From positions 1-64,000 of IMG/VR virus record IMGVR_UViG_3300032307_000369: a DNA stretch of 64,000 bases; one strand, written 5' to 3'. Of the stretch, positions 3,816-18,977 are shown in pieces (the first letter of the stretch is position 1; every line of letters starts with the position of its first letter). Made by a program: the position numbers and the translations under genes. Under the pieces are notes generated by a model. It had not been told where the DNA came from, made no database searches, and saw only the letters and a list, made by a program, of their open reading frames with translations.

Positions 3816-3827
3816 TTTTTCCTTTAT

Positions 3828-4221: not shown

Positions 4222-4230
4222 GAACTTTTT

Positions 4231-4248
4231 TGTTGTATTTTTACAACA
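4231..4248. promoter_or_regulatory. Putative operator TGTTGTA-N4-TACAACA
   Basis: Perfect 7-4-7 inverted repeat 9 nt upstream of the -35 of P1. Confidence 0.55.
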
Positions 4249-4249
4249 A

Positions 4250-4840
4250 CTATTCTTTATCAGCAAGATTGAAGTCTACTGGGATTGCAAGCCTACACTG
4301 TCCTTGGAAAGGATTAACATAATGATACAGGAAACTAGGGAAGATTGCAAATTCTCCTGACTTTGGACTGTATACATTGGATTTAAATTTTGGCATCATC
4401 TCAAGTAGATAGCCTCTGTTTGCGTTGACTCTTGGATCTTCCAGTGTGAGTTCCCCACCCTTGCCATCTTCAACCAATAGATAAAAGACTCCAGTCATGT
4501 GGGATCCTGAGTGATTGTGATTGATCATAAAGTATCCAGGAGAATATCCTGCAACCCATCCACGTAGATAACTGTGTGGGTAATTGGACAAGTCCAAATC
4601 AAAAGATTCTTTTAAAAATGTAGCAAACGCAGGGAGTACTACTTCTGTTTTGAATCGTTCAATTATTGCTGACCCTGACTCAAATATGTTATCTTGAAGT
4701 ATATCGCTTGGCGGATTTTGTAAATCGTAAAGGGCAAACAGTTCACCAACTAGATCATTCAACAGATTCTGATCTTTGATTGAATCTTTAAGCACAGGTG
4801 TGGGCCAAAGATAGTTCATTCCATTAGTTAACAAGGTCAA
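4250..4840 (-). CDS. 2OG-Fe(II) oxygenase, TIGR02466-like
   Basis: HNHSGSHMTGVFYL, GELTLEDPR, FPSFLYHYVNPF...R motifs. Confidence 0.85.
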   Translation of the reverse strand: MTLLTNGMNYLWPTPVLKDSIKDQNLLNDLVGELFALYDLQNPPSDILQDNIFESGSAIIERFKTEVVLPAFATFLKESFDLDLSNYPHSYLRGWVAGYSPGYFMINHNHSGSHMTGVFYLLVEDGKGGELTLEDPRVNANRGYLLEMMPKFKSNVYSPKSGEFAIFPSFLYHYVNPFQGQCRLAIPVDFNLADKE

Positions 4841-5225
4841 ACTCCTTTAAAAAATACATCTTTACATCTGGTATAATACCAATCTCTTCATTAAAATCAA
4901 AACCTACTGCATTCAGTATCTTATTGTATGTATCTTTATCCTGCTCGTAGGGAACATAGTATGGATCGTTGCCATGTAGCAATTCTGGATCATTTAGTGA
5001 TTCGTAAAAATCCTCACTAAAATGCTGGTTAAGCCATCGAGCATAGCATATGGCAACTACATAACTCTTAGCAGGATATACCCAACCTAATTCTGTTGTT
5101 GTAAAATACTTAATGGCGTTTTCTACTATTTCATCTCGTACTTCAACTTTGTGCAGACTTAGATCATCATCGTGTTCAGTATTGAGTCTGTGAAATATCT
5201 CTTGACGTATCTTCCATTCTTTCAT
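4824..5225 (-). CDS. Hypothetical protein of the radical SAM cluster
   Basis: ORF with overlapping neighbours; WVYPAKSYVVAICYA core. Confidence 0.7.
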   Translation of the reverse strand: MKEWKIRQEIFHRLNTEHDDDLSLHKVEVRDEIVENAIKYFTTTELGWVYPAKSYVVAICYARWLNQHFSEDFYESLNDPELLHGNDPYYVPYEQDKDTYNKILNAVGFDFNEEIGIIPDVKMYFLKEFDLVN

Positions 5226-6126
5226 AATATTCTAATAATCCTCGATAGCCATTACAACTGTTGGTTAGATCTCTAACGTATCTGTAATGTTCTGTTAAAC
5301 AATGACCCTTAAAAGGACAACTTTGACATATTGGGCTTAGACTTTGTTTTTCTTTTTCTGCCCAAGCAATGTATTCCTCAAAACTGTCTAGTTCTAAGAA
5401 GTATTCGTTATCGTTGAGATCAAACTCTAAAACAGCAAAATTTCCTTTAGGAGTAATGTACACATGGTCATCACTAAAACTGTTATATATTTTATCTAAA
5501 CTATCTTGTATATGATATTCATTGATAAACTCAAACTTCTTCTCTACTGGACTCTCTAACCACTTGATAACAAAGTTTTCAAAATCTCTGTGTGACACAC
5601 TGTGACAGTTGGCTTGGTTGGTGCTGTATGGTTTGATCTCAACTGATGATACTGCACTGCACATATTCAATTCATGTATCATGCTATCAACATCTAGGTC
5701 AATTAATTTTTTACTGGCTAGGATAAGAACGTATAAAGGCTTTTGAGACATCAGCATATTTTGATATACAGTTTCATTTTTTTCTCTAGCTTCAAAATCG
5801 TAGCTGACACTGAGCGTAATGTCATCGTCAAAGAACCAATCATGTATCATACTGTAGTTGGTTATGATATTAATAGAACCTGTATAATATTTTTTAATGG
5901 TACGTTTTAGTTCATAAAATTCTTCACGTTTTAAAATTCCAATTTCACCACCATACAAATCAATACCTTTAATTTTTGTATGTGCTGTAATTTGTTGTAG
6001 ACGTGTTTCTAACTGCTCAGAACTAATAGTCAATCTGTCACGTAGCTGTTGAGGAGTTAGGTAACAGAAGTTGCAACTAAAATTACAATAGTACGTTGGG
6101 TTAATGGATACTGTAACTTCACGCAT
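5176..6126 (-). CDS. Radical SAM protein with C-terminal Cys cluster (SPASM/Twitch-like)
   Basis: CNFSCNFC, LYGGEI, CQSCPFKGHC. Confidence 0.9.
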   Translation of the reverse strand: MREVTVSINPTYYCNFSCNFCYLTPQQLRDRLTISSEQLETRLQQITAHTKIKGIDLYGGEIGILKREEFYELKRTIKKYYTGSINIITNYSMIHDWFFDDDITLSVSYDFEAREKNETVYQNMLMSQKPLYVLILASKKLIDLDVDSMIHELNMCSAVSSVEIKPYSTNQANCHSVSHRDFENFVIKWLESPVEKKFEFINEYHIQDSLDKIYNSFSDDHVYITPKGNFAVLEFDLNDNEYFLELDSFEEYIAWAEKEKQSLSPICQSCPFKGHCLTEHYRYVRDLTNSCNGYRGLLEYYERMEDTSRDISQTQY

Positions 6127-7189
6127 ATTCTTTTACATACTCTGTTGGTTCTAAAATGCCTGACATGTTATTAGCTTCAATGATCTTAGGCGCGAGTGCC
6201 TTCATGCGTATACAATGTGCCTCTACTAGATTGAAATCTTTTAGGTCTTTGATTGTTTTGCGACAGCCGTTACAAATTTCAAACATTGGACAAGTGTAAC
6301 ATGCTTGCTTCAAACTTTGTAGTTCAGGCTCTACTCTTAATGGGAAGATCTTTTTACCTAACATCTCTTCTTTAAAATTGATTGAGTACAGTCTGTCATC
6401 TCCAAATGATCCACAACTGTAGTAGTCCCCGCTTGGTTGTAGTGTTCTAATACCGCCATCACATTTACGATTTTGTGGACATGATGTTGCGCCACCGTTT
6501 AATCGCTTGACCATTTGTTTAGTATTAAACTCCCATTCAGTCAACCCTAGTTCCCAAATCTTAACATATATTTCGTAAATCTTTGCCAGCATGTAGGGTT
6601 TGCCCTCTTGTCCCATTACAATGTTTTTAAATTTAACAGGGGGACCACTACTAAAAGCATAGTTGAGTTTACATTCAACACCCATCTTCTTAGCAAGCTC
6701 TACATTCTTAATGGCAAGATGTTCATTCTCTTCTGTAATAACACTAATAAAGTCTGGACGATAACCCACGTGCTCTAACATAGCATCACTTACAGCCCAA
6801 AAATCTTCTTCACTAAATTCTGTAAGGTCACCCTTTAATCTTCCGCCACCGTATTGGAATGATGTAGTAATACCCATGCGTTTGTGATTAAACAACTCTT
6901 TCCACTTGCTGGGATTTTTATAAAATGGCCAAAGATTAGATGTAAAACTTAACGTGGCATTAGAACCAATAGTTTCTAAATGTTCAATAATTTTCCAGTA
7001 GTAGCTAGGATCCATCATTAAAGGATCACCACCATTAACAATGATAGTTTGTGTTTCTGGGTAGCGTTTTAAAAATGCGTAGACATACTCTAAATCTAAT
7101 TCTAAAGATTTATCTTCAGTAATGTGTGTGCTACTACAGAACGTGCATTTAAAGTTACAACGTTCTGTTGGTTTAATTATTAAATCCAT
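6119..7189 (-). CDS. Radical SAM/SPASM protein
   Basis: CNFKCTFC, NGGDPL, CPQNRKC..CGSF..CYTCPMFEICNGC. Confidence 0.92.
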   Translation of the reverse strand: MDLIIKPTERCNFKCTFCSSTHITEDKSLELDLEYVYAFLKRYPETQTIIVNGGDPLMMDPSYYWKIIEHLETIGSNATLSFTSNLWPFYKNPSKWKELFNHKRMGITTSFQYGGGRLKGDLTEFSEEDFWAVSDAMLEHVGYRPDFISVITEENEHLAIKNVELAKKMGVECKLNYAFSSGPPVKFKNIVMGQEGKPYMLAKIYEIYVKIWELGLTEWEFNTKQMVKRLNGGATSCPQNRKCDGGIRTLQPSGDYYSCGSFGDDRLYSINFKEEMLGKKIFPLRVEPELQSLKQACYTCPMFEICNGCRKTIKDLKDFNLVEAHCIRMKALAPKIIEANNMSGILEPTEYVKEYA

Positions 7190-7190
7190 T

Positions 7191-7484
7191 TTATTTTGAC
7201 AGTGGACTGCCTACTTCCAAATTGCCATCACCTCTTTCTAAACCATTCAATTGACGTATAACGTCCATGATTAAATGCTTATATTTCTGTGTAGGTCCTT
7301 CAAGTTCTTTAATCTTGGCATCCCAGTAATCTCTTTTCTCTGGAATCTCCATATCCCTAACGCAATTATTAGCGTATACCAAATACTCTTGGCAATAAAT
7401 TTCACGCTGTGCTTCGTACTTTTCTTTTAAAGAAATAAGTTCTTCTGGACTTAGGGTGTCTAAATCTACTCCATGGTCAATCAT
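7191..7484 (-). CDS. Hypothetical helical protein
   Basis: ORF translationally coupled to its neighbours. Confidence 0.6.
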   Translation of the reverse strand: MIDHGVDLDTLSPEELISLKEKYEAQREIYCQEYLVYANNCVRDMEIPEKRDYWDAKIKELEGPTQKYKHLIMDVIRQLNGLERGDGNLEVGSPLSK

Positions 7485-9112
7485 GTTATTCTCCTAAATA
7501 GCTCATTCATTATTACTAATTTGTTTTCTTCAACCCAACGAGGAATGGCTTCAGTCCTTACCACACCTTTGATAGTATTAATATTTCTAGGCGGAGTATC
7601 AGGATTTAAAATGTCTTCAATTTCATCATAGATCTCTTGATACCCATCTAAAATTTTAAAAATCTCCCAACAGTGTTTTGCAAATTCACTCACAGTAACA
7701 CTGTCTTTAAACATGTCATACATTGTTCGTATTAAATTGTTGCCTGCAAAATTCATGAAAAACATTTGCACAACATCTTCTCTTGTAAAAGAATAGCTAC
7801 TGGCAACTGTTTTATAATATGTTCTGCGATTCTTAAATAATCCGCCTTGGTTGGCAATATCCTGTTCATCAACGTTGTCAGTATATACATCAACCAGCTC
7901 AATGTTGTAAATTTCTTGATAAACAGGATCACTAATTTCGCTGTCAGGTAACGCCATTAAGTCGTAACGCCAACTTGACCATGCTCCCAAATCATAAAAC
8001 AATTCCCATTCTGCATAAAAATCATCTAAGGTACTTCCTGGCATGGCCATGATAAGTTCCATGCCAGGATGATAATCATATTTGGCACATAGATCCCGCA
8101 TGTATTTGCCAAGTTTAATTTTATCTGAGACTTTCATATCAGTGCGTTTAGCAACTTGCATTGCAACATCACTGATGCTTTGAATACTGATGTTGGGCAC
8201 AATGGCTGCTCTATCTTTTCTACCAAACGGTTGAATGATCTCAAAGAAACTATCTACTAGTCTTTTTCTTCTTTCGTAGTCTTTTGTTTTTACTTGACTG
8301 ATATCAATGAAGGTTAACCCTGCATCTTTGGCAAACTTTAAGAGTCCTAAGTCACGTTCTTCAAACACACCAAAATTAGCATCAGCACAAATAGCTTCAG
8401 TATATCCTGCTTCTACAATAGCAACACAATCCCGTTGAGCCCATTCAACTTCTTTTTTAATAATTTTTCCACCAATGCCGCCACCCCATTCACAATAGGT
8501 ACATTTAAAAGGACAACCTCTTGTGGTCTCAATGACCATCATGAGTTCCATATCGTGTTCACGACCATAGGCACTGAGTTCTTTTAGGAAACTTAGATTC
8601 TCTTCATACGGACTTGCTAGTGGAAATTCCCAACGCTGTTGTTTATTAGAACGTAACTCATAAGTGATTTGATTGACATCAATATTATCTTCAATGTATT
8701 GATCAATTACGTCAGTGACAAAGAATTCACCAGGGAACATAGGGCGTAAAATATAATCATACATCCAACGTTTTTGCCAAAGCTCTTTGTCTTTGGCTCC
8801 TATCATTGGACCACCTAGCAAATTTACTACTTTTGGATTTTGTTTTTTAACGTATTCAGCAATGTTGTCGCACAGTGTATAATTCCAAACATAACTGCTG
8901 TACATGACTATATCAGCTTCTTTAATTAGCTCATATATCTCTTCAATGTTTTGATACTTGTTATATTTGTAAGGAGGTTCTAGCCATTCAACTTGATCGG
9001 CGTATTTTCCGTTATGCTCGTAAAAACTTTTGCATAGCATCCACGTGACTGGATTGATTAAACTCCAGTCGGCATGTGGCGGATTGATAAAGGCTATTTT
9101 GATTCTTTTCAT
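7481..9112 (-). CDS. Cobalamin-binding radical SAM protein (class B methyltransferase-like)
   Basis: N-terminal B12-binding-type domain (SSYVWN...LLGGP), TTRGCPFKCTYCEW, DANFG. Confidence 0.88.
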   Translation of the reverse strand: MKRIKIAFINPPHADWSLINPVTWMLCKSFYEHNGKYADQVEWLEPPYKYNKYQNIEEIYELIKEADIVMYSSYVWNYTLCDNIAEYVKKQNPKVVNLLGGPMIGAKDKELWQKRWMYDYILRPMFPGEFFVTDVIDQYIEDNIDVNQITYELRSNKQQRWEFPLASPYEENLSFLKELSAYGREHDMELMMVIETTRGCPFKCTYCEWGGGIGGKIIKKEVEWAQRDCVAIVEAGYTEAICADANFGVFEERDLGLLKFAKDAGLTFIDISQVKTKDYERRKRLVDSFFEIIQPFGRKDRAAIVPNISIQSISDVAMQVAKRTDMKVSDKIKLGKYMRDLCAKYDYHPGMELIMAMPGSTLDDFYAEWELFYDLGAWSSWRYDLMALPDSEISDPVYQEIYNIELVDVYTDNVDEQDIANQGGLFKNRRTYYKTVASSYSFTREDVVQMFFMNFAGNNLIRTMYDMFKDSVTVSEFAKHCWEIFKILDGYQEIYDEIEDILNPDTPPRNINTIKGVVRTEAIPRWVEENKLVIMNELFRRIT

Positions 9113-9145
9113 AGATTATACTATTATACAGCATAAAGTTAACAA

Positions 9146-9661
9146 TTACAAGCCTTCTACATTATAAGTGAAACTAGCAAGTCTTCGTGTAATTTTACTT
9201 TTACTAGCTCTATGGAAAAAGCCAGGAGTTTGATTGAGCAACACTAAATCTCCTTTTTTAGGATAGTAAGTGTCAATGTTACCTTCCCCGGGCCATTTGA
9301 ATTGTATTTCCCCACCAGTTGCAGGGTTCTGGTCATCAAAGTAAAATAAGAAGAAGATATTACCTCCTTCAAATCCATCGTTGTGCCAAATACTGCTGTC
9401 AGCATCTACACCTTCAGCAATAACATAACTCATAAAATTATTCTTTGGAAACGCTTGATTAATGTATTTTTCAGTTATGTATACTTTGGCTGCTTCCATT
9501 TGCAACACTACTTCTTTAGGCAGGTTATCTTTAAAGTTATCACGCAAACGCTCTTCATGATATTGAAACTCTACGCTATCAATATCGATCATGCTGGCTA
9601 ATTCTTCTTCTCTAAAATAAGCATATCCTTTAGTAAGGAAATCATTCTTCCAATCTAACAT
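9146..9661 (-). CDS. 2OG-Fe(II) oxygenase
   Basis: WHND, GGEIQF, FHRA...RRLASF. Confidence 0.8.
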   Translation of the reverse strand: MLDWKNDFLTKGYAYFREEELASMIDIDSVEFQYHEERLRDNFKDNLPKEVVLQMEAAKVYITEKYINQAFPKNNFMSYVIAEGVDADSSIWHNDGFEGGNIFFLFYFDDQNPATGGEIQFKWPGEGNIDTYYPKKGDLVLLNQTPGFFHRASKSKITRRLASFTYNVEGL

Positions 9662-9662
9662 C

Positions 9663-10685
9663 TCATTTCTCCAGTTTCATTTGTACGTATTTAAATGACT
9701 TTTTAAAAACACACTCATCTAAGTCTTTGGTTAATTCTTTATAGTCACTGCTGATAAAACAACTGAACCCGCATTTTTGATAAAACTCACAAGTAAAGCA
9801 ATTGCGTTCATTCATAAAGTTTTGAATAATAGCTGTGCCTTCTAAATTGGATGTGACATTGTTTTTCATCAACACACTTCCTGAACACCCTTTAGGTGAA
9901 GTGTTATCGTACATAATAGTAAAACTACTACCACGTGTACAAGCCATTTTATTGTTGGGTGCAGTTCCTAAAAATGATTCTACATTCATAGTCTTAGGAT
10001 ACTTATCAATTAATGTTTTATAAAATTCATACAACTCTGACTCTTTTGGCATCATTACTTTTAATGCGTTATGACCAGGTAACAAGTGATCCCATGTCAT
10101 GGTAAAGTTATTGTACAAGTAATCGTGATACTCGTCACCCTTTAAAAGATTAGCAATATTTTGTTTAGTGATTACCAGGCTGATTAATTTAACATAAGGT
10201 TTGAACTGTTCAATATTTTGTTTAAAAATTTCAAACTGAGCAGGATTAAATCTGCCAGCTAGGTCATAACTAACACTCATAGTCAAGTCGTATTTTTGAC
10301 AAAACTGTATCACATGATCCATTCTATCGTTAACTAAATTCGTAACAAAGTTGAAGATTAACACTTTATCCTTAGGAACTTTGTTTCGAACTTGTTTTAT
10401 GAATTCGCCGTAATACTCAATAAAGCCTTGATCTATTAGTTCATCCTGAAATAGTTCGCCACCCATAATATGTAGGTGAAATTCTTTGTTTTTATTATTT
10501 TTAATCCAATTGCATACAGGGTCAACTTTTTTTAGAATTTCCTCTTGGCTCAAACCAATACGACTGTTATGATCCTGTGGACAGAATACACAACTCATAT
10601 TGCAATGTTCAAAGAAGTTGACTACGATCTCAGACCAGTCAATTACTTTTTCCTTTATTACGCCATAAAAAAATTCATCACTCAT
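9663..10685 (-). CDS. Radical SAM protein (SPASM-like C-terminus)
   Basis: CNMSCVFC, MGGELF, CFTCEFYQKCGFSC. Confidence 0.9.
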   Translation of the reverse strand: MSDEFFYGVIKEKVIDWSEIVVNFFEHCNMSCVFCPQDHNSRIGLSQEEILKKVDPVCNWIKNNKNKEFHLHIMGGELFQDELIDQGFIEYYGEFIKQVRNKVPKDKVLIFNFVTNLVNDRMDHVIQFCQKYDLTMSVSYDLAGRFNPAQFEIFKQNIEQFKPYVKLISLVITKQNIANLLKGDEYHDYLYNNFTMTWDHLLPGHNALKVMMPKESELYEFYKTLIDKYPKTMNVESFLGTAPNNKMACTRGSSFTIMYDNTSPKGCSGSVLMKNNVTSNLEGTAIIQNFMNERNCFTCEFYQKCGFSCFISSDYKELTKDLDECVFKKSFKYVQMKLEK

Positions 10686-11824
10686 GCAAACACCATTTGT
10701 TTTAATCTAGGATCGTTATTATTTTTTAACTCATACACAAGTTGTAGAATATAATTATTCCATTTTTGTACATGGGTTAGTATATCAAATACAATACTAA
10801 CGTTGTCCTTTTCAAAGTCTTTCTTTAGTATGCTGTTTATCTGTTCAGACGTCATGTTATCACGATTTTGAATCAGTGACCTTAACGTGTCAAAAACAAA
10901 ATGGGCATGATTACTTTCAAAGTAGTCTTCATCTAGTAATCTTATCTTATCATCTATTTGAATATCTTTGAACCAAAACTCTTGTAAGAATTTTCCAAGT
11001 TCTAATATTTCATCAATGTGTGCTAGAAAGTAAGCACTGTCCCTAGTTATGAACTTTAATTCGTTGTCAAACATCCAATATAACTTTGGATGAGATCTAA
11101 GTTTTTCTCTCCAACAATCATCGTCCCAAGATATATCTAAATCAAATGCTTCTTTTACATTTGCTTGCATGAAGTACTTGATAAAATAGAAGTACCACTC
11201 GCTAACTTCCATGGCTAATGCTTTTGATAACACATAGATGTATTTGTCTTTAAAAACTTCAATATGTGTTTCATCATTGAAAAAGTTTGCAAGATGCCAT
11301 TCAATACTGAATCCTTCAATGTGCTGTTTAACCCATTGTTGTCTTAGACCATTGTCACTCCATGGATTTAGATTATCAAATAATTCAATAAATTGTTTTT
11401 TGTTTAAGAACTCTATGTCAAGTATACTTGTTTTATTAAAATCCATAAAACTACTATTCAGCACTATAGCAGGGAAATGTAGTTTTGATCTTTGTACAGA
11501 TGCATTATAGCAACAAAATGCCAAGTTAGCATCCATGTTAGGAAAAATTGTTTTTATCCAGTTTACAAAGATGATATTAAAAGCATCCATGTCAACATAA
11601 AAGTTAAGTTTAGCTTCGTGCTCTAAACTGAGTAATAGTGAATGCCAATCTTTATAAGCACCATTTGCGCCCACTAGGTCTGCATACGTTGTAGCTTGAT
11701 GCTTGATTGGGTTTAGTGTAGACTTTTGTGCAACATTGGGATTTTTACTGACGATGATTCTTTTTTTAGAATTGTTGACTAGATAGTCTGGAGAGACATA
11801 TATTTTATTAAAAAGGTGTAACAT
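10682..11824 (-). CDS. Hypothetical protein, paralog of 12395-13555
   Basis: MLHLFNKIYV N-terminus, FYVDMDAF..WIKTIFP. Confidence 0.7.
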   Translation of the reverse strand: MLHLFNKIYVSPDYLVNNSKKRIIVSKNPNVAQKSTLNPIKHQATTYADLVGANGAYKDWHSLLLSLEHEAKLNFYVDMDAFNIIFVNWIKTIFPNMDANLAFCCYNASVQRSKLHFPAIVLNSSFMDFNKTSILDIEFLNKKQFIELFDNLNPWSDNGLRQQWVKQHIEGFSIEWHLANFFNDETHIEVFKDKYIYVLSKALAMEVSEWYFYFIKYFMQANVKEAFDLDISWDDDCWREKLRSHPKLYWMFDNELKFITRDSAYFLAHIDEILELGKFLQEFWFKDIQIDDKIRLLDEDYFESNHAHFVFDTLRSLIQNRDNMTSEQINSILKKDFEKDNVSIVFDILTHVQKWNNYILQLVYELKNNNDPRLKQMVFA

Positions 11825-12369
11825 TATACAATCCTTTTATATTGATCTACATAAGATTCGTACCCGTCAGTGTTAATATATAAATCAAATGGCATGCACA
11901 ATCTTGTTCCCGGTCCACGATGAGTTAGTACTTCATGTCCTAAATAACTAGGGAAGATTAATAGGTCGCCAGGTTCTGGATGAATTTCAACTGGGTTGAA
12001 CCAACTTTGATTGATGTTAATTTGTTGTGATGGAGGATGTAATACGATTTCTCCTCCAGTTGCAGTTTGAAGATAAAATATCCCAGATAACCATCCCCAA
12101 GGATGCCAATGCCAACGAGCACTGTCTCCAGGCTCAATATACAGCATATTGCCGTTTAATTTTACCTCTGCACCTTTAGGTAGCTCTTCTTTCCAAGTTT
12201 CTGAAACAGCACTCATGATTTTTTCATAAAGTTTAGCTGTGAACTCGTCAGTGTCTTTAAACCATTTATTTTCGTGCTTGCTTACAACATCACTTTGAAA
12301 CATGAGTGTTGCCAACTCTTCGTTACCATGCTCATAATGTATTTTAGTTGGCCAAATTTCTCTTTTCAT
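11824..12369 (-). CDS. 2OG-Fe(II) oxygenase, TIGR02466-like
   Basis: WHWHPWGWLSGIFYL, GDLLIFPSYLGHEV...R. Confidence 0.85.
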   Translation of the reverse strand: MKREIWPTKIHYEHGNEELATLMFQSDVVSKHENKWFKDTDEFTAKLYEKIMSAVSETWKEELPKGAEVKLNGNMLYIEPGDSARWHWHPWGWLSGIFYLQTATGGEIVLHPPSQQININQSWFNPVEIHPEPGDLLIFPSYLGHEVLTHRGPGTRLCMPFDLYINTDGYESYVDQYKRIV

Positions 12370-12394
12370 TTAAACGCCTTTATAACACATTTGG

Positions 12395-13555
12395 TTATTG
12401 GATCACAAATGCGTTTAATTTAGATATTTGATTTTCTTTGTACAGTTGTTTTATATGCGCTAAGAGATAGATGTTATATCTAATTTTATCGTCAGAACCA
12501 AAAATTAGAAATTCTGTAACATTACTAGAACCGTCTATTTCATTCATAATTAGAGTTTCTAAATCGCTGTCAGTCAATTCAGATTTTCTACACATAGTAA
12601 AAACTTCTTTATTATGATTGATCCAGTTCAAGCCATTCTCGCCTGGATCATTTAATAATCCCAATGTCCAGTAAATGGTCAAGTGAGCTTTAAATTTTTC
12701 AAACTGTGAAGCAGTAATGTTGTTAAAATAAATCAAGCTATCGCTGTGTGGAACCGCAATTGATTCAACTCCCCAAATAGAAGAAGAGAACCAAATATCA
12801 AATGCAGGGTCTTCAACGGCTTCAGCTAGATTACTAGTAGTATACGTCTTTGTTGGACTGAATAAGTTTATGACATCTGGATTTAATAAATTTTCTATAA
12901 TGAAGCTTTTGCATTCATAAAAAGATTCTTGCATACCAAACTGTCTTTTGTTCAGTGCTATTGTTTTTAATTGTTCTTTACATGACCCATTGGCTAGATA
13001 AGATGCCAATAATAGTTCTAGACTTAAATCTGATTTAACTAGATTAACAAAACCATTGTACACGCTTGAATCTACATTGATTTGATAAAATACTTGACTA
13101 AACTCTTGTTGACTAATAAAATCTGCAATTTGAGTTTCTCTATAAGATCTTGAATAATTGTAGTATGTAGATGTTCCAAACATTCTAGTTTGAAACTGGT
13201 AAGTTGATACCATAGTATATGCATCATCAACTGTAGCTGACGGCAATACTGCTTTGATCCATGTGATTACAATCTTTAAAAAGTTTTCTTTATCTACATA
13301 TACAATGAGTTTTCTATCGCTAGTAAATGTATATTGATTTAACGAATTTAAAAATAACAGAAAGTTAGAATATTTTTTATCTTCTCCAACTAAATCGTCA
13401 ATTGATCTTGCATATTCGATCAACCTTCCATGCGCTACTCCATCAAGGTCTTGGAGCATACTAACTCCATTGGTTTGAGAAATAACAAGTCTGTCGTTGT
13501 TAACATCAATAACATCGTCAGATTCTAAATAAACTTTTTTAAACAGATGGAACAC
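12395..13555 (-). CDS. Hypothetical protein, paralog of 10682-11824
   Basis: MFHLFKKVYL N-terminus, VYVDKENF..WIKAVLP. Confidence 0.7.
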   Translation of the reverse strand: MFHLFKKVYLESDDVIDVNNDRLVISQTNGVSMLQDLDGVAHGRLIEYARSIDDLVGEDKKYSNFLLFLNSLNQYTFTSDRKLIVYVDKENFLKIVITWIKAVLPSATVDDAYTMVSTYQFQTRMFGTSTYYNYSRSYRETQIADFISQQEFSQVFYQINVDSSVYNGFVNLVKSDLSLELLLASYLANGSCKEQLKTIALNKRQFGMQESFYECKSFIIENLLNPDVINLFSPTKTYTTSNLAEAVEDPAFDIWFSSSIWGVESIAVPHSDSLIYFNNITASQFEKFKAHLTIYWTLGLLNDPGENGLNWINHNKEVFTMCRKSELTDSDLETLIMNEIDGSSNVTEFLIFGSDDKIRYNIYLLAHIKQLYKENQISKLNAFVIQ

Positions 13556-14252
13556 TTTGAATCTCCTCGATATCTCTTTTCATTGCTTCAACGAAATCAT
13601 CAGGATTAAACTTGTCAACGACAATCGCCCATGTTATAATGAAAATAGAGTTGTTGGGGTTAGCCCAATAATGGTATAAATTTTTACCTTTAAAAATATA
13701 GTCGTTAAAATATACTTCATGATACTTGAAGTTTTTGCTGTCTACAGTACTGTAGAAATCATAAAAATCATCATACTTCAATAATGATACAAAATTAATT
13801 CCAATGGTTAAATTGTTATCAAATCTTGGAGCTTGCTTAATTTGCTCTTTATAATTGTCATCATTAATTGAATATGTATTAAAATATAATAGGCTATCTA
13901 GTATACTAGCCCATACATCTAGTAGCTCTTTGTTTGCTTTGATAAACTCAGTATAACCAAAGTCATTTACTCCCTTATATTGCAGTAATAAACGTATGGC
14001 TTCTTTTTCTAAGAAAGGAATATTGACTAGAAAAGGTGAATTTAAATAATCAAGTAATAGCCCGTCAGCTAACTCAGTGTGTGCTTCTAACTTGATATCT
14101 GAAGGAATATCTAAATTACTAAGATAAGTTAATAACTTTGTCCCTTTCAAATCGCTGTTTTCATAATCAATTAGATAAAATGTTTCTTTATCAGCAAAAT
14201 ATTTTTTTAATTCTTCAATTTTAATAGGCGCAGTTGTTTCAATAATTTTCAT
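13539..14252 (-). CDS. Hypothetical protein of the radical SAM cluster
   Basis: Long ORF coupled to the CHxx-motif gene. Confidence 0.7.
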   Translation of the reverse strand: MKIIETTAPIKIEELKKYFADKETFYLIDYENSDLKGTKLLTYLSNLDIPSDIKLEAHTELADGLLLDYLNSPFLVNIPFLEKEAIRLLLQYKGVNDFGYTEFIKANKELLDVWASILDSLLYFNTYSINDDNYKEQIKQAPRFDNNLTIGINFVSLLKYDDFYDFYSTVDSKNFKYHEVYFNDYIFKGKNLYHYWANPNNSIFIITWAIVVDKFNPDDFVEAMKRDIEEIQSVPSV

Positions 14253-14848
14253 CTTCTGCCTCTTGAATTATGGCAATTGCTATGACAACTAACGTGGCAA
14301 ACTTCTTTATAGTAAGTGGTACCATCGTCACCTAAGATATTTGGTCTAAGAGTTTGATATACTGTACTCATGTTAAGAATAAAGTTATTTAAATTTCCTC
14401 TAGAAATGATGTTGTTTGATTGTATGTCAAAATAGTTATTGATCACTGTAGGTTGCTCGCCCTGAGAAGTGATCGCAATCCTAGTCAAGTCAACGTTGCT
14501 AGTTGTTGCTGTGTATGGACCAGCTGGGGTATTTCCGCCGTTACCTGTGACTTTACGAACACAGCGTATATTTCTAATTCTAGTATAATATTGAATAATT
14601 AGACGTATGCCTTCAGTTACGCCGTCAGCCTCAATTACTCCAAGAGCTCCAAAATTATTATTAACTTCAACAGGATCTAATCCTCCCCAATCAGTGCGAT
14701 GGGCAAACCAACCGTCTTCTGCTTCTGGAAATGGTTTAATGTTTGTGCCCCAAACAATACCGGTTCTAGCAACACCGTTGATTTGTTCAATAGTACGTTG
14801 AACAATGGTTAATCGTCTAATTGGTCCTGGACTTTCTAATGCTGGCAT
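14249..14848 (-). CDS. Putative radical SAM target/precursor with C-terminal CHxxCHxxCHxSRGRR
   Basis: Ends YYKEVCHVSCHSNCHNSRGRR; lies directly downstream of a rSAM/SPASM gene. Confidence 0.7.
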   Translation of the reverse strand: MPALESPGPIRRLTIVQRTIEQINGVARTGIVWGTNIKPFPEAEDGWFAHRTDWGGLDPVEVNNNFGALGVIEADGVTEGIRLIIQYYTRIRNIRCVRKVTGNGGNTPAGPYTATTSNVDLTRIAITSQGEQPTVINNYFDIQSNNIISRGNLNNFILNMSTVYQTLRPNILGDDGTTYYKEVCHVSCHSNCHNSRGRR

Positions 14849-14849
14849 C

Positions 14850-15908
14850 TTAAATTTCCTTGATTATGAACACTCTGCTGTTCTTTTTAGTATTTATGTT
14901 TTCTAACTCTAGCATCAAACTCTTTGGAGCACCACAAACCTCGCCTTGCCATTCCAATTGATGACAGTCGCCGCCACATTTATGAAATACTGCACAGTTA
15001 TAGCATCTTGAGTCCATATTACGTTCGCAAGCCATATTTTCTAATCTACGCTCGCTAGTTAACAACGTAGTTAAATCATCGTCAATATGTCCAAACTGTT
15101 GCTCTGGAGCACTATTTGGACATCCAGATATAGTACCGTCAGCGTTCAGTGTGAATAACTTTTCCTCACAATCCCTACAAAAAGTTCCGCCTCGAGTAAG
15201 GTTGTGCTCAAATTTAGAATACACAGTTTCTAAAAATTCGTTATTAAACCATGATCTAGCATTGTGTTGCTCACTCAATTGATGCATGAGTAAAAACCAA
15301 GCATCTTGTTCCAAGTTGGTTGGAAATATATCAGGATACAGTCTAGCGTTTCCATTATTGGTCAAACGCTCTAAGCTCATTTCCTTAACACCCAAATCCC
15401 GTACCCATTCTAATAAATCCAAGGGATTCATTTTTACAGTTCCGCTGGTAACACTTATGAACAATTTAATTTCAACTCCCAGGTCCTGCAAAGTTTGTAA
15501 ATTCTTACGCCATAGGTCATACTGCTTGGGATTGGCAAATCTAATGTCTGGATCCCAACTAGTACCAATTCTGTTACCAAGCGGGCCTTGAATAAATGCA
15601 ATAATTTCTGGAGTGAGTTTAAACACTAGGTTAGTGGTAACTCCCCACGTCATATAGGGCCAAATCTCTTTACTTTGATCGTACACATACTGCATAGTAC
15701 TTAAATCAGCTAGGAAAGGTTCACCACCATGAAACTCACAATGAACATGTGGACTATTGGGAATCGCTTGACCCAACCTTCTCAGCCAGTCTGCTACTTT
15801 AACATGGTCCCAATATATCTTAGCACCGTTAGTTCCGCTGGTAAAACAGTGTTTGCAATTTAAATTACAAGTTTCTGTTGTTTTAAGGTAGATACTTAAT
15901 TCTTTCAT
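14850..15908 (-). CDS. Radical SAM/SPASM protein
   Basis: CNLNCKHC, FHGGEPFL, FCRDC..GCPN..CYNCAVFHKCGGDC; start placed at the ATGA overlap with the upstream gene. Confidence 0.92.
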   Translation of the reverse strand: MKELSIYLKTTETCNLNCKHCFTSGTNGAKIYWDHVKVADWLRRLGQAIPNSPHVHCEFHGGEPFLADLSTMQYVYDQSKEIWPYMTWGVTTNLVFKLTPEIIAFIQGPLGNRIGTSWDPDIRFANPKQYDLWRKNLQTLQDLGVEIKLFISVTSGTVKMNPLDLLEWVRDLGVKEMSLERLTNNGNARLYPDIFPTNLEQDAWFLLMHQLSEQHNARSWFNNEFLETVYSKFEHNLTRGGTFCRDCEEKLFTLNADGTISGCPNSAPEQQFGHIDDDLTTLLTSERRLENMACERNMDSRCYNCAVFHKCGGDCHQLEWQGEVCGAPKSLMLELENINTKKNSRVFIIKEI

Positions 15909-16363
15909 TTTAGCCCAATGCTTATTGCCCAAGTGTCTCTTTGATTGAACACTCTGTGTTTGTGCCCTTTTGGAATAGACACACTGTCGCCTGACTTTAG
16001 AATATAAGTTTTATTTTTGATTTGCACTCTTTTGCGACCCTTAATAACGTACAACATTACATTTGTGGTATCATGGTGCCAACCAAAACTATAGTCAGTT
16101 CTAGGACTATAGAATAAATGGATATCTTTAATTTTAAGTTTACCAAAACACTTTTTAATATTTTGGTTCTTTTCTAGTCCTTCAACCTTAATGGCCGAAT
16201 AGTTCCTAATACTAGCCACATACTGAGTATATGATAATTTTTGATTAGCATACCAAGACCACATGGTATGACCTGTTCTATCAATAACGACAATCTCGTT
16301 ATTGTCAAAACGCTCAAATGAAATTATCTCTTCCTTGAGCATTTTGTACAGCGTTTTTACCAC
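15905..16363 (-). CDS. JmjC/cupin-fold oxygenase
   Basis: SFGWHHD, GRKRV, IPKGHKHRV. Confidence 0.8.
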   Translation of the reverse strand: MVKTLYKMLKEEIISFERFDNNEIVVIDRTGHTMWSWYANQKLSYTQYVASIRNYSAIKVEGLEKNQNIKKCFGKLKIKDIHLFYSPRTDYSFGWHHDTTNVMLYVIKGRKRVQIKNKTYILKSGDSVSIPKGHKHRVFNQRDTWAISIGLK

Positions 16364-17271
16364 TTAATAAATCCTCGACTGTATCCTTCAGGACGATTAT
16401 ATCCATCTTCAAACGCCTGCTGCCATTCTGTATTTCTATCGTATCCCTTAGTCCAAAATTGACTAACATCTAGATCTCCACGCTCAATCCAACCTACAGC
16501 CAATTTCATACAATGATGGAATGTTTTTGCACGTGGACTTGGCATGATAATAGTAACGGCTTTCCAAAGCAAACTACTAAAATTAGTTACTAGTGCGGGT
16601 TTCTTTTCACAAGCCATGATCCAAAGAGCACCTGGAGCAAGTAAGTCTTGTTCTATTACTAGATTGTTTTCTCTAATATCTATAATCACATTATACTGTT
16701 CATGTTGTGGTTTATCAACTAGCACTCCGTTGTATTTTTGCCACATGTCTTGATTACTACTACCAAGAACTTCAATGCTGGCAAACTCCACATGAGTTAG
16801 GGATAATGTATGATAAGCGATCCAAGCAAGAAATCCACTACCAATAATCAAACAGCGACTGTCTGGACCGCTACGGTCACCAACTGCACGTAAATCTTGT
16901 TCAACCAAATTAATGCCACAAGCAACTGGCTCAATAATATATTTTGGATCTGCTTCTGGAACTCTTACCCACTCATTCATTTTTACATTATAGAAGTCTG
17001 CATAAGCAGGCTCGCCACGAGTGGCTATGAAATCACCTTCTTTGATTCCGCTAACAAGAGCACCTACTCGTGTTACCTGACCAAGACCTTCATGCCCTTG
17101 CATGTGTAAAGGTAACGGACCAAACTCCCCACGCATCATAGCAATATCGCTACGACAAACACCAGTCATTACAGCTTTGACTTCAATTTCATTTGATAAT
17201 GGTTCAGGCTTCTCCCAAATTTGTTCTTTGAAAGCGCCGTTGCTGTCTGTATAAAGTAGCCTAGTTTTCAA
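16357..17271 (-). CDS. Medium-chain (Zn-type) dehydrogenase/reductase
   Basis: GVCRSD, GHEGLG, IEPVACG, IIGSGFLA. Confidence 0.85.
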   Translation of the reverse strand: MKTRLLYTDSNGAFKEQIWEKPEPLSNEIEVKAVMTGVCRSDIAMMRGEFGPLPLHMQGHEGLGQVTRVGALVSGIKEGDFIATRGEPAYADFYNVKMNEWVRVPEADPKYIIEPVACGINLVEQDLRAVGDRSGPDSRCLIIGSGFLAWIAYHTLSLTHVEFASIEVLGSSNQDMWQKYNGVLVDKPQHEQYNVIIDIRENNLVIEQDLLAPGALWIMACEKKPALVTNFSSLLWKAVTIIMPSPRAKTFHHCMKLAVGWIERGDLDVSQFWTKGYDRNTEWQQAFEDGYNRPEGYSRGFIKW

Positions 17272-18152
17272 AACTGAATCCTCTCATGTATCCACAAGTC
17301 CTGTAAAAATTGTCTTTGCCAAAATTGCTCATTGCTTATGTTGCTGATAGCACAATCAATCATGTTTTTATACGCTTCTTCTGGACAAAGCCCTAACTCA
17401 AAACGTTTAACTGTGCCATCTTTCATTTCAAATTCTACTGCACGATTGTCTGCTACACCATCTGCCCAGTTAGCTTCCATCTTCCATGTTTTTCCATTTT
17501 GCATGTACTTGATCTTACAAAGATCGTCAACATCATACACACCGTCCCTTTTGACTGCGCCATATTCTGTATCTTCAATTTTGTCTAAAGTATGCATTTG
17601 GCGAGCTTCTTGTCCAGTCATTTGTGCGTCCATCCACTTGTCATTAAGTGCAATGTACAAACTGAGCAAGTGTGGCATAAGGTCTCTACTAACTCCACCA
17701 AATGCCAATTTCTTTGTAGTAAACCAAGTACCTGGACCTGGGATACGATTCTTGTTAATCCATTTAATTTTTATAGCCTTGGCATCTGCTACACACTCCC
17801 GCATCTCTGCAATGTTATCACGCCACATGTTATTTTTAACCAACATGAAACGTGTATTTGGGAATGTGTTTACAAGAGTTGACCACACGTCAGCATTGGA
17901 TACCCCAGGCTTTTCAATAAAGATTATTTTGGCATGTTTAGCCAATTTCATAGCCATTTCAAAATGTGTAAAGTTTGGAGTACAAATATGCACAGTATCA
18001 AAAGGACCATGAGCAAAAATAGCAGACTCAATATTGGGCAAGTCAGCACGTTTACCAATATCGTTATCTACTGTAATCACTTCAATTTTTAATTCTTCCA
18101 ACACTTTTTTGTATAGAGATCCAATCCCCATACCCACTACCAGGCTTTTCAT
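17268..18152 (-). CDS. Gfo/Idh/MocA family oxidoreductase
   Basis: VVGMGIG, ICTPNFTH, IEKP, GGVSRDLMPH. Confidence 0.85.
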   Translation of the reverse strand: MKSLVVGMGIGSLYKKVLEELKIEVITVDNDIGKRADLPNIESAIFAHGPFDTVHICTPNFTHFEMAMKLAKHAKIIFIEKPGVSNADVWSTLVNTFPNTRFMLVKNNMWRDNIAEMRECVADAKAIKIKWINKNRIPGPGTWFTTKKLAFGGVSRDLMPHLLSLYIALNDKWMDAQMTGQEARQMHTLDKIEDTEYGAVKRDGVYDVDDLCKIKYMQNGKTWKMEANWADGVADNRAVEFEMKDGTVKRFELGLCPEEAYKNMIDCAISNISNEQFWQRQFLQDLWIHERIQF

Positions 18153-18948: not shown

Positions 18949-18977
18949 ATTATAATATAGTAGACATTACATGTCAA
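18949..18977 (-). promoter_or_regulatory. Consensus sigma70 promoter driving the leftward cluster
   Basis: TTGACA-N17-TATAAT. Confidence 0.85.

Follow-up and report, generated by a model that had tools for sequence, protein, structure and literature searches.

A phage gene cassette predicted to mature a protein with a conserved Cys-His-x-Ser tail

Introduction

Four or five radical SAM (rSAM) enzymes and several oxygenases surround a novel protein with a Cys- and His-rich C-terminus in a gene cassette carried by a jumbo phage, which raises the question of what this cassette acts on. A preliminary description of the locus, made from the sequence alone, proposed that the 199-aa protein encoded there is the substrate of the enzymes, that its N-terminal region is beta-rich and could belong to a virion or fibre component, and that its C-terminus is converted into a metal-binding or cross-linked module. 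We therefore analysed the first 64,000 nt of the IMG/VR record IMGVR_UViG_3300032307_000369 (referred to as the window) and compared the cassette with its relatives in phages, metagenomic viral contigs and bacteria. The cassette turned out to be widespread but previously uncharacterised, and it is shared with other phages and with predatory bacteria.

Results

Gene content of the cassette

ORF listing and translation identified 19 co-oriented genes on the minus strand between positions 18927 and 4250, 17 of which lie within the range 4250-18152 described initially. Most junctions overlap by 1-17 nt or are separated by 1 nt. The motif CxxxCxxC is present in exactly five of the proteins (g3, g4, g6, g8 and g14), of which four match Pfam Radical_SAM and/or Fer4_12 as well as PHROG 1802. 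The fifth, g6, has neither a Pfam Radical_SAM nor a PHROG hit and was assigned on the basis of its CxxxCxxC motif and its B12-type matches. A full SPASM core (CxxCx5Cx3C) was found in three of these proteins, and a partial one in g3. In addition, the genes encode three 2OG-Fe(II) oxygenase-like proteins, a JmjC-like cupin, two dehydrogenases and the 199-aa protein, which ends in CHVSCHSNCHNSRGRR. The back-translated motif occurs once in the window and in 0 of 100 shuffles. The features are summarized in Table 1. The observation made in the preliminary description was thus confirmed, except that the body of the 199-aa protein is not beta-rich: AlphaFold2 predicted a mixed alpha/beta fold with three long helices.

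Table 1. Features of the operon, listed from its promoter to its last gene. Locus counts refer to the 125 IMG/VR and phage loci that were compared; L numbers denote individual loci of the comparison.
Position	Strand	Feature	Supporting data
18949..18977	-	Perfect sigma-70 consensus promoter (TTGACA-17-TATAAT) upstream of the first gene of the operon	12 of 12 matches; only perfect site in 3400-19600; consensus match only
18613..18927	-	g19, 104-aa unknown protein; lineage-specific, not part of the conserved cassette	No Pfam hit; homologues only in L004 and L005
18149..18616	-	g18, 155-aa unknown protein; lineage-specific	
17268..18152	-	g17, GFO/IDH/MocA-type NAD-binding oxidoreductase; lineage-specific add-on	GFO_IDH_MocA, PF01408, 6e-8; 2 loci only
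16357..17271	-	g16, Zn-dependent (MDR-type) alcohol-dehydrogenase-like protein; lineage-specific add-on	ADH_N, 7.6e-10; 3 loci only
15905..16363	-	g15, cupin / JmjC-like putative protein hydroxylase; first gene of the conserved cassette	Cupin_2, 2.3e-11; JmjC_2, 1e-7, 31.9 bits against cut-off 22; homologues in 65 of 125 loci, directly upstream of the g14 homologue
14850..15932	-	g14, radical SAM/SPASM enzyme immediately upstream of the tail protein; candidate primary maturase	CxxxCxxC at residue 22; CxxCx5Cx3C at residue 310; SPASM TIGR04085, 30.6 bits against cut-off 27; PHROG 1802, 2e-66; 42-50% identical homologues in Atu_ph07, RSL2 and DT01; 93 of 125 loci
14249..14848	-	g13, 199-aa alpha/beta protein of predicted novel fold ending in the conserved tail; predicted substrate	See text
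14249..14299	-	Coding sequence of the C-terminal motif CHVSCHSNCHNSRGRR plus the stop codon	See text
13539..14252	-	g12, 237-aa conserved partner; confidently predicted novel fold; candidate scaffold or chaperone	PHROG 20767; no invariant catalytic-type residues; 91 of 125 loci
12395..13555	-	g11, 386-aa unknown protein; conserved cassette member and paralogue of g9	
11824..12369	-	g10, 2OG-Fe(II) oxygenase	2OG-FeII_Oxy_5, 6.6e-16
10682..11824	-	g9, 380-aa unknown protein; distant paralogue of g11	18% identity to g11
9663..10685	-	g8, radical SAM/SPASM enzyme	CxxxCxxC; CxxCx5Cx3C; 67 of 125 loci
9146..9661	-	g7, 2OG-Fe(II) oxygenase-like protein	2OG-FeII_Oxy_3, PF13640, 22.4 bits against 27 (below the gathering score); the homologue in L146 passes at 31.8 bits
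7481..9112	-	g6, B12-binding radical SAM enzyme (class B methyltransferase-like); optional cassette member	CxxxCxxC at residue 200; Pfam B12-binding, 26.4 bits, below the cut-off of 32.1; NCBIfam KedN5-type B12 rSAM methyltransferase, E 2e-24, far below the family cut-off; 14 of 125 loci
7191..7484	-	g5, 97-aa unknown protein, specific to this phage	Found in its own contig only
6119..7189	-	g4, radical SAM/SPASM enzyme	CxxxCxxC; CxxCx5Cx3C; best hit is the DynA model at 47 bits, far below cut-off
5176..6126	-	g3, radical SAM enzyme with a partial (twitch-like) C-terminal Cys motif	CxxxCxxC
4824..5225	-	g2, 133-aa unknown protein; conserved cassette member	PHROG 20737, 7e-52; 21 of 125 loci; 28 homologous ORFs over all loci
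4250..4840	-	g1, 2OG-Fe(II) oxygenase; last gene of the cassette	2OG-FeII_Oxy_5, 3.6e-13

The tail motif is conserved in a large and divergent family

If the 199-aa protein g13 is a substrate, its C-terminal motif should be conserved and linked to rSAM genes, and a failure of either had been named beforehand as grounds for rejecting the idea. Neither failure was observed. The tail, (Cys-His-x-Ser)x3-Arg-Gly-Arg-Arg followed by the stop codon, is conserved in homologues from Atu_ph07 (gp170), RSL2/RSF1 (gp068 in RSL2) and pPa_SNUABM_DT01 (DT01; gp065), although the body identity to Atu_ph07 gp170, RSL2 gp068 and DT01 gp065 is only about 27%, and it was also found in more than 118 IMG/VR contigs and in about 38 bacterial contigs, mostly from Bdellovibrionota. 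A DNA-pattern scan of IMG/VR returned at least 120 loci, whereas we estimate about 0.02 chance matches.

In an alignment of 84 members with a mean column identity of 12%, the only invariant columns are the three Cys, the three His and three Arg. Because these columns were required by the search pattern itself, we also considered representatives found with a profile, which is a less circular check: 137 of the top 149 end in exactly this motif, and most of the remainder are near-variants. Ser occupies the fourth position of the three units in 88, 78 and 85% of members, respectively. In total, the family has 912 representatives at 50% identity (E<=1e-3).

The body of g13 is conserved along its length among close relatives and was predicted with a pLDDT of 81 and a pTM of 0.77. 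Both this body and the partner protein g12 are confidently predicted folds without a match in the PDB. Together with the absence of any detected protease or exporter gene from the cluster in the window, these data are consistent with a protein rather than a small peptide as the product.

These results also bear on the possibility that g13 is a large-leader RiPP or cofactor precursor. In this view, the folded body would act as a leader or recognition domain, as in proteusin or Nif11-type precursors, and the tail of roughly 16 residues would be modified, cut off by a host or unrecognised protease and released at lysis as a free peptide or redox/metal cofactor, which the neighbouring dehydrogenases g16 and g17 might use in this phage. 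The position of the motif at the extreme C-terminus, as in RiPP cores, the many tailoring enzymes, the dehydrogenases adjoining the cassette in this lineage and a promoter suggestive of early expression (see below) speak for this possibility, and a lytic phage needs no exporter. However, no protease was found by Pfam in any of the loci examined, and there is no conserved cleavage motif before the tail, where positions -24 to -17 vary and resemble a beta-strand pattern. Moreover, the body ranges from 124 to 364 aa, is a confidently predicted globular fold and is fused to other domains in some members, the dehydrogenases occur in only 2-3 loci, and the cassette is tightly linked to fibre genes (see below). 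We consider this explanation unlikely.

Gene order and linkage to radical SAM genes

The gene order g15-g14-M-g12-g11/g9-g8-(g6)-g7-g4-g3-g2-g1, in which M is the tail protein gene, is fixed in about 80 loci and was also found in Bdellovibrionota. The tail protein gene directly follows an rSAM/SPASM gene in the large majority of loci, and 104 of 118 IMG/VR loci contain at least one rSAM-type ORF, with a mean of 2.0-2.7 per roughly 9 kb. In contrast, the two dehydrogenases and the two genes beyond them are not part of the conserved cassette and occur only in loci L004, L005 and L117.

Because the Cys and His residues could simply bind metal, we considered whether the tail is an unmodified metal-binding or trimerisation motif, comparable to the His-coordinated Fe and Zn sites of phage fibres and spikes, while the rSAM enzymes and oxygenases act on something else, such as a small molecule, nucleotide, lipid or sugar, or on the fibre protein itself. 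The i, i+4, i+8 spacing would place Cys and His on one face of the helix predicted at residues 186-192, metal sites on the three-fold axes of fibres are established, and no enzyme can be assigned to a peptide-modifying family above cut-off. Conversely, the motif gene is near-universally adjacent to an rSAM/SPASM gene across very divergent phages and bacteria, the best matches of the enzymes, though weak, are all to peptide or protein maturases over the full length (PapB, DynA, anSME), and no small-molecule pathway genes are conserved in the cassette. This explanation appears the least likely of those considered.

Comparison with known maturation systems

None of the enzymes reaches the curated cut-off of any named RiPP family, including ranthipeptide, CXXX-repeat and His-Xaa-Ser, so that the chemistry cannot be read from homology. 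The HXS antiphage system (HxsA-D; His-Xaa-Ser system, TIGR03976-03979; PMC13128918) resembles the cassette in that two or more rSAM enzymes mature a folded protein rather than a short peptide, that the functional element is a short array of His-x-Ser units rich in basic residues, and that a small accessory protein is involved. Here, however, each unit is Cys-His-x-Ser, there are exactly three units, and they are located at the extreme C-terminus followed by RGRR. There is no peptidoglycan-binding domain and no N-terminal processing signal, the cassette contains 4-5 rSAMs plus a cupin, 2OG oxygenases and three novel proteins, and it is encoded by phages and Bdellovibrionota, not Enterobacteria.

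The HXS protein, which is matured by rSAM enzymes and blocks DNA entry (PMC13128918), suggests a further possibility, namely that the tail protein is an intracellular or envelope-directed effector rather than a virion part, for example a superinfection-exclusion or counter-defence protein that works like, or interferes with, HxsA as a basic, rSAM-matured HxS array binding DNA or cell-envelope components. The three H-x-S units with the basic RGRR end, the weak best hits of g8 and g4 (which include HxsC) and of g14 (which include HxsB), the early-type promoter in this phage and the presence of the cassette in predatory bacteria are compatible with this view. However, the Hxs models score 17-28 bits against cut-offs of 268-370, no signal peptide or peptidoglycan-binding domain was found on any member, and placement directly after fibre genes in most loci is not expected for an exclusion gene, which makes this reading doubtful.

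Three-residue cyclophane (triceptide) maturases such as XyeB, GrrM/OscB, FxsB, HaaB and HtkB are SPASM-type rSAM enzymes that act on repeated aromatic-x-x motifs, His is an accepted ring donor (HtkB: His C2 to Lys C-beta; PMC11499958), and H-x-S fits the motif form. These family models score 17-28 bits against cut-offs of 310-445, the substrate here is a folded protein of 125-360 aa, an invariant Cys precedes each His, and the cassette has additional oxygenases. Among thioether-forming SPASM enzymes acting on Cys-rich targets (PapB/ranthipeptides, SCIFF, the CXXX-repeat system, and QhpD acting on the QhpC protein subunit), the four-residue period of the Cys residues matches the CXXX-repeat logic, the best full-length match of g14 is the PapB model, and QhpD is a precedent for cross-linking a protein subunit. 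Again, scores are far below the cut-offs (PapB, 53 against 340; CXXX-repeat maturase, 32 against 350), and the tail has no acidic acceptor residues. In proteusin-type pathways (polytheonamide), rSAM enzymes, B12-rSAM C-methyltransferases and a 2OG hydroxylase, the same mixture of enzyme classes, act on one ribosomal product with a large N-terminal domain; here there is no nitrile-hydratase-like leader and no protease, the rSAMs carry SPASM domains, and the context is that of phage fibres.

Linkage to tail fibre genes in related loci

In 59 of 71 related metagenomic loci, the gene directly upstream of the cassette encodes a tail-fibre or spike protein with a Peptidase_G2-type self-cleaving chaperone domain. 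The upstream gene is co-oriented in 72 of 80 loci, is positive for tail-fibre PHROGs in 48-58 of 71, and ends in a Peptidase_G2 / phi29 gp12-like chaperone domain. In locus L059, the tandem tail-protein genes start at the stop codon of a collagen-like fibre gene, and in Bdellovibrionota S74 fibre-like genes lie beside the cassette. Tail fibre or spike proteins with C-terminal intramolecular chaperone domains include phi29 gp12 (Peptidase_G2), the S74 proteins of K1F and T5, and the Bdellovibrio MAT fibres (PMC10769870); they are neighbours, not homologues, of the cassette proteins, and none lies in the window. In the literature, the virion proteins of Atu_ph07 cluster from CDS 170 onward (PMC6102473), so that a virion location of gp170 would be inferred from gene position alone, and eight rSAM genes sit inside the structural-gene cluster of Aeromonas phage 332-Vera (PMC12390700).

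This linkage gives only indirect support for the phage studied here. No fibre gene adjoins the cassette in the window. RSL2 and DT01 likewise showed no Peptidase_G2-type domain in the regions examined. Furthermore, the operon is preceded by the perfect sigma-70 consensus, no T4-type late promoter motif was found nearby, and the operon lies next to a tRNA array, which in a T4-like phage suggests early expression, atypical for virion genes.

Discussion

The interpretation in the preliminary description was partly supported. The 199-aa protein is very probably the target, no protease or exporter was detected in the cluster of the window, and the fibre idea gained indirect support from related loci, but the body is predicted to be alpha/beta, the dehydrogenases do not belong to the conserved cassette, and no enzyme reached the cut-off of any named RiPP family. 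Positions 4250-16363 represent one copy of a conserved 10-13-gene cassette, and the explanation we favour, with moderate confidence, is that its product is a new rSAM-matured protein, probably fibre-associated, rather than a small secreted peptide. Our analysis established the gene content, the motif invariance, the synteny, the breadth of distribution, the novelty of the predicted folds and the fibre linkage in related loci, whereas it is by inference that we propose that modification occurs at all, which residues it affects, and that the protein has a virion location, a metal-binding capacity and the function outlined below.

In this model, g13 folds into a compact alpha/beta body presenting the C-terminal tail. 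The adjacent rSAM/SPASM enzyme g14 and its paralogues g8, g4 and g3 would abstract hydrogen atoms from tail residues and install cross-links, of which His-to-Ser C-beta cyclophane links on the three H-x-S units and/or Cys thioether links are chemically the most plausible. The JmjC-like cupin g15 and the 2OG oxygenases g10, g7 and g1 would hydroxylate tail residues, with Arg or His as the precedented targets, and the B12-rSAM g6 would add C-methyl groups in the lineages that have it. The proteins g12, g11/g9 and g2 look non-catalytic and may be substrate-presenting or assembly factors. The combination of oxygen-sensitive rSAM enzymes and oxygen-requiring 2OG oxygenases in one pathway is unusual, though precedented in RiPP pathways, and on present evidence the modification is predicted from sequence alone. 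The finished protein would carry a rigid, basic, possibly metal-binding C-terminal knob, and may act together with a trimeric tail fibre or spike in most phages and with S74-type fibres in Bdellovibrionota, that is, at the surface of the prey cell.

Composition of the gene cluster

Because the preliminary description had reported a run of co-oriented genes with five radical SAM (rSAM) proteins, three 2OG-Fe(II) oxygenases, a JmjC cupin, two dehydrogenases and a 199-aa protein with a Cys/His-rich C-terminus, we first re-examined the gene content of the window, and this observation was confirmed. The junctions between the ORFs mostly overlap by 1-17 nt or are 1 nt apart. Four of the five proteins with the N-terminal CxxxCxxC motif matched Pfam Radical_SAM and/or Fer4_12, and all four belong to PHROG 1802. 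The SPASM model TIGR04085 scored 30.6 bits for g14 (cut-off 27) and 25.3 bits, just below the cut-off, for g4. The fifth protein, g6, gave only weak matches to class B (cobalamin) rSAM methyltransferases, with 26.4 bits on the B12-binding domain (cut-off 32.1) and 85.7 bits on the KedN5 family (cut-off 700).

Among the remaining genes, g1 and g10 are 2OG-FeII_Oxy_5 proteins, g7 is a weaker 2OG-FeII_Oxy_3 match, g16 is a Zn-ADH-like protein and g17 is a GFO/IDH/MocA oxidoreductase. The cupin g15 carries a JmjC_2 hit above the Pfam cut-off (31.9 bits against 22), but only over residues 80-119, and Cupin_2 is its stronger hit; its assignment as a JmjC-like hydroxylase is a prediction. Searches of Pfam, NCBIfam and PHROG gave no functional name for g13 (the 199-aa tail protein), g12, g11, g9, g2 or g5.

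The window is the first 64 kb of a 245,550-bp IMG/VR contig, and the phage is T4-like, with an rIIA-like gene and a tRNA array just downstream of the cluster.

Features of the cluster and its surroundings, with positions in the window
Feature	Position	Strand	Properties
Gene cluster	18927-4250	minus	19 co-oriented ORFs, of which 17 fill 4250-18152
g3, rSAM	5176-6126	minus	CxxxCxxC at residue 14; partial SPASM core
g4, rSAM/SPASM	6119-7189	minus	CxxxCxxC at residue 11; CxxCx5Cx3C core with flanking Cys
g6, B12-type rSAM (sub-threshold matches)	7481-9112	minus	CxxxCxxC at residue 200; no Pfam Radical_SAM hit, no PHROG hit
g8, rSAM/SPASM	9663-10685	minus	CxxxCxxC at residue 28; CxxCx5Cx3C core with flanking Cys
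g9, unknown protein	10682-11824	minus	Distant paralogue of g11 (18% identity)
g11, unknown protein	12395-13555	minus	Distant paralogue of g9 (18% identity)
g13, tail protein	14249-14848	minus	199 aa; ends CHVSCHSNCHNSRGRR
g14, rSAM/SPASM	14850-15932	minus	CxxxCxxC at residue 22; CxxCx5Cx3C core with flanking Cys
Sigma-70-type promoter match upstream of g19	18977-18949	minus	Perfect TTGACA-17-TATAAT, 12 of 12
Sigma-70-type promoter match, divergent	19020-19048	plus	11 of 12
Sigma-70-type promoter matches between cassette and tRNA array	4221-4193 and 4125-4097	minus	11 of 12 each
tRNA array	376-3414	minus	16 tRNA genes, directly downstream of the cassette
Further tRNAs	50781-53988	plus	Three, including two tRNA-Leu(taa) copies 60 nt apart
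rIIA-like gene	59281-61449
PHROG 9582 dehydrogenase and large proteins of PHROGs 22485 and 35576	27573-28595, 34490-36379, 47369-49414		Large proteins of unknown function

Conservation of the C-terminal motif and its linkage to rSAM genes

Because a lack of conservation of the motif, or of its linkage to rSAM genes, had been named beforehand as grounds for rejecting the proposed target, we searched for homologs of the cluster. A megablast of the whole cluster against 50,697 phage records gave no match at the DNA level. At the protein level, however, g13, g12 and g14 found the same 15 records, comprising Agrobacterium phage Atu_ph07, Sinorhizobium phage Phosso, Ralstonia phages RSL2 and RSF1 and their relatives, Burkholderia phages FLC6, FLC8 and SURPRISE13, and Pseudomonas phage pPa_SNUABM_DT01. 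In each of these, the order is cupin, rSAM, small hypothetical protein, g12 homolog, followed by further rSAMs and 2OG oxygenases, and the small protein ends in a variant of the same tail (...CHSSCHASCHNSRSRR in Atu_ph07, ...CHSSCHTSCHGSRGRR in RSL2 and ...CHTSCHTSCHSARGRR in DT01). A tblastn search of cultured phages with class-2 (140 aa) and 257-aa family members gave no match.

A back-translated DNA pattern for CHxxCHxxCHxxRxRR-stop occurs once in the window and in no shuffled sequence, and was found at no fewer than 120 loci in IMG/VR, where we estimate about 0.02 chance matches. The ORFs ending in the motif are 124-364 aa long, and all 189 collected form one homology component. In an 84-member alignment with 12% mean column identity, the only invariant columns are the three Cys, three His and three Arg, which is partly by construction because the members were collected with the pattern. 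A less circular profile search of 1.84 billion representatives returned 912 proteins at E<=1e-3 and 725 at E<=1e-10; of the top 149, 137 end in exactly the motif, and most of the remainder are near-variants or truncated. The fourth residue of each unit is Ser in 88, 78 and 85% of members, and the residue between the arginines is Gly in 88%, resulting in the consensus (C-H-x-S)3-R-G-R-R-COOH. One family member, a metagenomic representative of 453 aa (P0057), carries an N-terminal Pfam Gly_rich_2 domain fused to the tail-protein domain, and other members of 250-364 aa have N-terminal extensions with no known domain.

Two cases were not accepted as members. Ralstonia phage RP31 (79172-86742 of AP017925) has a superficially similar arrangement of two fibre-like (YomR) genes, then a 125-aa ORF, then rSAM genes, but the 125-aa protein, which ends in a His/Tyr-rich tail (...SHTHYSPDGSY), lacks the motif and shows no homology to the family; it may be a different rSAM target next to fibres. 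The Campylobacter phages CP220 and CPt10, with 11-12 rSAM genes, were not hit by g14 at E<=1e-5.

Gene order of the conserved cassette

To define the cassette, we compared the 19 window proteins with all ORFs of the fetched loci by phmmer. About 80 viral loci share the fixed order g15-g14-[tail protein]-g12-g11/g9-g8-(g6)-g7-g4-g3-g2-g1. Homologs of g16 to g19 were found only in L004 (the contig of the window itself), in the related locus L005 and, for g16, in locus L117, so that the two dehydrogenases are lineage-specific additions rather than core components. The small protein g5 is unique to this phage, and L005 has an extra g11 copy.

A second architecture, found in phage contigs of 20-150 kb (L006, L031, L040, L059, L082, L083 and about 20 other IMG/VR loci), has two tandem tail-protein genes of about 127 aa that lie directly after collagen-like tail-fibre genes and are followed by very divergent rSAM genes of PHROG 31457. 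The enzymes of these loci were too divergent for phmmer; even so, 24 of 29 such loci contain rSAM-type ORFs, as do 104 of 118 loci overall.

Predicted structures of the uncharacterized proteins

With the 84-member alignment, g13 is predicted at pLDDT 81.4 and pTM 0.77 as an alpha/beta fold with three long helices, and its tail is of lower confidence. The long beta-rich N-terminal region proposed in the preliminary description, which could have been a fibre-like domain, was therefore not supported. Foldseek found no relative of the g13 model in the PDB (best E 0.98) and only uncharacterized phage proteins in BFVD, including Atu_ph07 gp170. The conserved partner g12 is predicted at pLDDT 88.5 and likewise has no PDB neighbour, the best E values for the two models being about 0.9-1. 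The invariant residues of g12 (Pro, Tyr, Asn, Gly, Phe, Ser, Leu) do not look catalytic. Sequence profiles of the g13, g12 and g11/g9 families returned only chance-level hits in the PDB, and hhalign found no relationship between the three families.

These results bear on the possibility that the tail is released as a free RiPP or cofactor. The precursor-like protein has a confidently predicted globular fold and is not a short peptide with a removable leader, and no protease or transporter domain was found in the cluster, in line with the preliminary description.

Genomic context in phages

The gene immediately upstream of the cassette is co-oriented in 72 of 80 viral loci and is often very large, up to 2,824 aa. 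Of 71 such genes scanned, 58 hit PHROG 22593, 48 hit PHROG 19602 ('tail fiber protein'), and several are collagen-like fibres. Fifty-nine of the 71 share a C-terminal domain of about 130 aa that matches Pfam Peptidase_G2, the IMC autoproteolytic domain, in 32 of 45 members, as well as the PDB chains of the phi29 pre-neck appendage and the Dpo31 tailspike chaperone domain. Atu_ph07 gp176 has this domain, whereas it was not found in the window or in the fetched parts of RSL2 and DT01. In locus L059, the first tail-protein gene starts at the stop codon of a collagen-like fibre gene. Published notes agree with a structural neighbourhood, although the presence of the tail protein itself in virions is an inference: Atu_ph07 virion proteins identified by ESI-MS/MS cluster in CDS 170-215, where gp170 is the tail protein in RefSeq numbering, and Aeromonas phage 332-Vera has eight rSAM genes inside its structural-gene cluster.

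In this particular phage, several points speak against the fibre reading. The perfect sigma-70 consensus upstream of g19 is of the early type and sits back to back with the plus-strand promoter match in a 170-nt divergent intergenic region, whereas the T4 late-promoter motif TATAAATA is absent near the cluster and not enriched in the window. The cluster lies between the tRNA array and non-structural genes, and neither the rIIA-like gene, the dehydrogenase nor the large PHROG proteins is a recognizable structural gene. Because early expression would fit an effector or cofactor role better, we keep three alternatives open, namely a released RiPP or cofactor, an HxsA-like effector and an unmodified metal site.

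Occurrence in bacteria

The same pattern gave 47 hits in bacterial contigs representing one genome per species, of which 38 have a genuine motif ORF of at least 60 aa. Eight have none: seven are chance matches in other lineages, mostly high-GC, and the eighth, L168, is a Bdellovibrionota locus that still carries cassette genes. One further hit, L157 on an Actinokineospora chromosome, is a low-complexity Cys/His/Arg repeat (...CRCRCHCHCHCHCHCHRHRR) unrelated to the family. Most of the real hits are in Bdellovibrionota MAGs, some on Mb-size contigs, and carry the same rSAM, g12 and 2OG genes, in copies that may be prophage-borne or native. Exact-sequence look-ups of four Bdellovibrionota proteins found nothing on record, while one look-up returned a record. 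In a 176-kb Bacteriovoracaceae contig, the cassette is flanked by cellular-type genes and by a divergent 375-aa Peptidase_S74 protein, and S74-like proteins lie near the cassette in at least five more such loci. The whole cassette occurs in these predatory bacteria, often beside small Peptidase_S74-ended fibre-like genes. S74-ended 'MAT' fibres are the prey-recognition adhesins of Bdellovibrio (PMC10769870).

Comparison with known rSAM maturation systems

We compared the cassette with each known system in turn. In the HXS defence system, HxsB and HxsC mature the protein HxsA at an SHRSS unit of its HxS array (PMC13128918). The tail of the g13 family also has tandem H-x-S units, three of them, but, unlike in HxsA, each unit is preceded by an invariant Cys. 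Against HxsB (TIGR03978), g14 scored 26.5 bits (cut-off 370), and against HxsC (TIGR03977), g4, g8 and g3 scored 27.7, 21.7 and 17.0 bits (cut-off 267.9), with matches covering only the N-terminal rSAM core. No Pfam domain was found on 84 members of the tail-protein family, and their N-termini show no signal-peptide-like hydrophobic stretch by eye.

As in targets of the CXXX-repeat system, the tail has a Cys at every fourth residue (-16, -12 and -8) in all members collected, although these were selected by a pattern that required it; 137 of the 149 profile-found members agree. The CXXX-repeat maturase (TIGR04115), however, scored 32 bits for g14 (cut-off 350), over residues 13-75 only. Among the thioether-forming SPASM enzymes, PapB (NF047865) scored 53.3 bits (cut-off 340) and the SCIFF maturase (TIGR03974) 23.9 bits (cut-off 425). 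Radical SAM cyclophane synthases can use His as ring donor (PMC11499958), and the H-x-S motif of the tail is present as a candidate aromatic-x-x motif for the aromatic-to-C-beta cross-link of triceptide (three-residue cyclophane) systems, but the 3-CyFE maturase models GrrM/OscB, FxsB, YhhB and AmcB scored 17-28 bits (cut-offs 310-445). The DynA model scored 47 bits (cut-off 450). None of the curated models for these families was reached; the cassette would therefore work like these systems but is not a member of any of them.

Discussion

Our analysis partly supports the interpretation offered in the preliminary description: its central inference, that the 199-aa protein is the target, withstood the computational test of motif conservation and rSAM linkage, whereas neither the beta-rich body nor the dehydrogenases as core components held. 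What the data show directly is a conserved C-terminal peptide on a protein with a confidently predicted fold, its neighbourhood with SPASM-type rSAM enzymes, a JmjC-like cupin and 2OG oxygenases, and the absence of a protease or exporter from the cluster. That the rSAM enzymes cross-link the tail, that the oxygenases hydroxylate it, and that g6, where present, methylates it are inferences by analogy, as are the activity and substrate of the cupin, the chemistry and the biological role.

Radical SAM maturation is known for peptides and for a few cellular proteins, but no rSAM-modified phage protein has been described in the papers that we could search. Published jumbo-phage papers only remark that so many rSAM genes are 'highly unusual' (PMC2853527, PMC12390700) or suggest a role in DNA repair or metabolism (PMC8541153). 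The cassette defined here explains those gene clusters in Atu_ph07, RSL2/RSF1, the FLC phages, DT01 and hundreds of uncultured phages, and extends one odd cluster to a large, uncharacterized family shared by phages and predatory bacteria. It provides a precise candidate substrate in the form of a 16-residue invariant tail, and adds at least three protein families for which we found no structural relatives in the PDB.

A more far-reaching reading is not excluded but remains unlikely on present evidence. In this view, the cassette would represent a new class of virus-encoded, rSAM-cross-linked structural protein, in which a small novel-fold subunit has its (Cys-His-x-Ser)3-RGRR tail converted by four dedicated SPASM enzymes and oxygenases into a rigid, metal-binding or covalently locked module that caps or arms receptor-binding fibres. 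Tailed phages and predatory Bdellovibrionota would then share this machinery as a common tool for attacking Gram-negative cell surfaces.

The cassette links phages and predatory bacteria through a shared, fibre-adjacent module. It could also be a source of new cross-linking enzymes that accept a folded protein and, if the product sits on receptor-binding fibres, it would be a new principle in virion chemistry.
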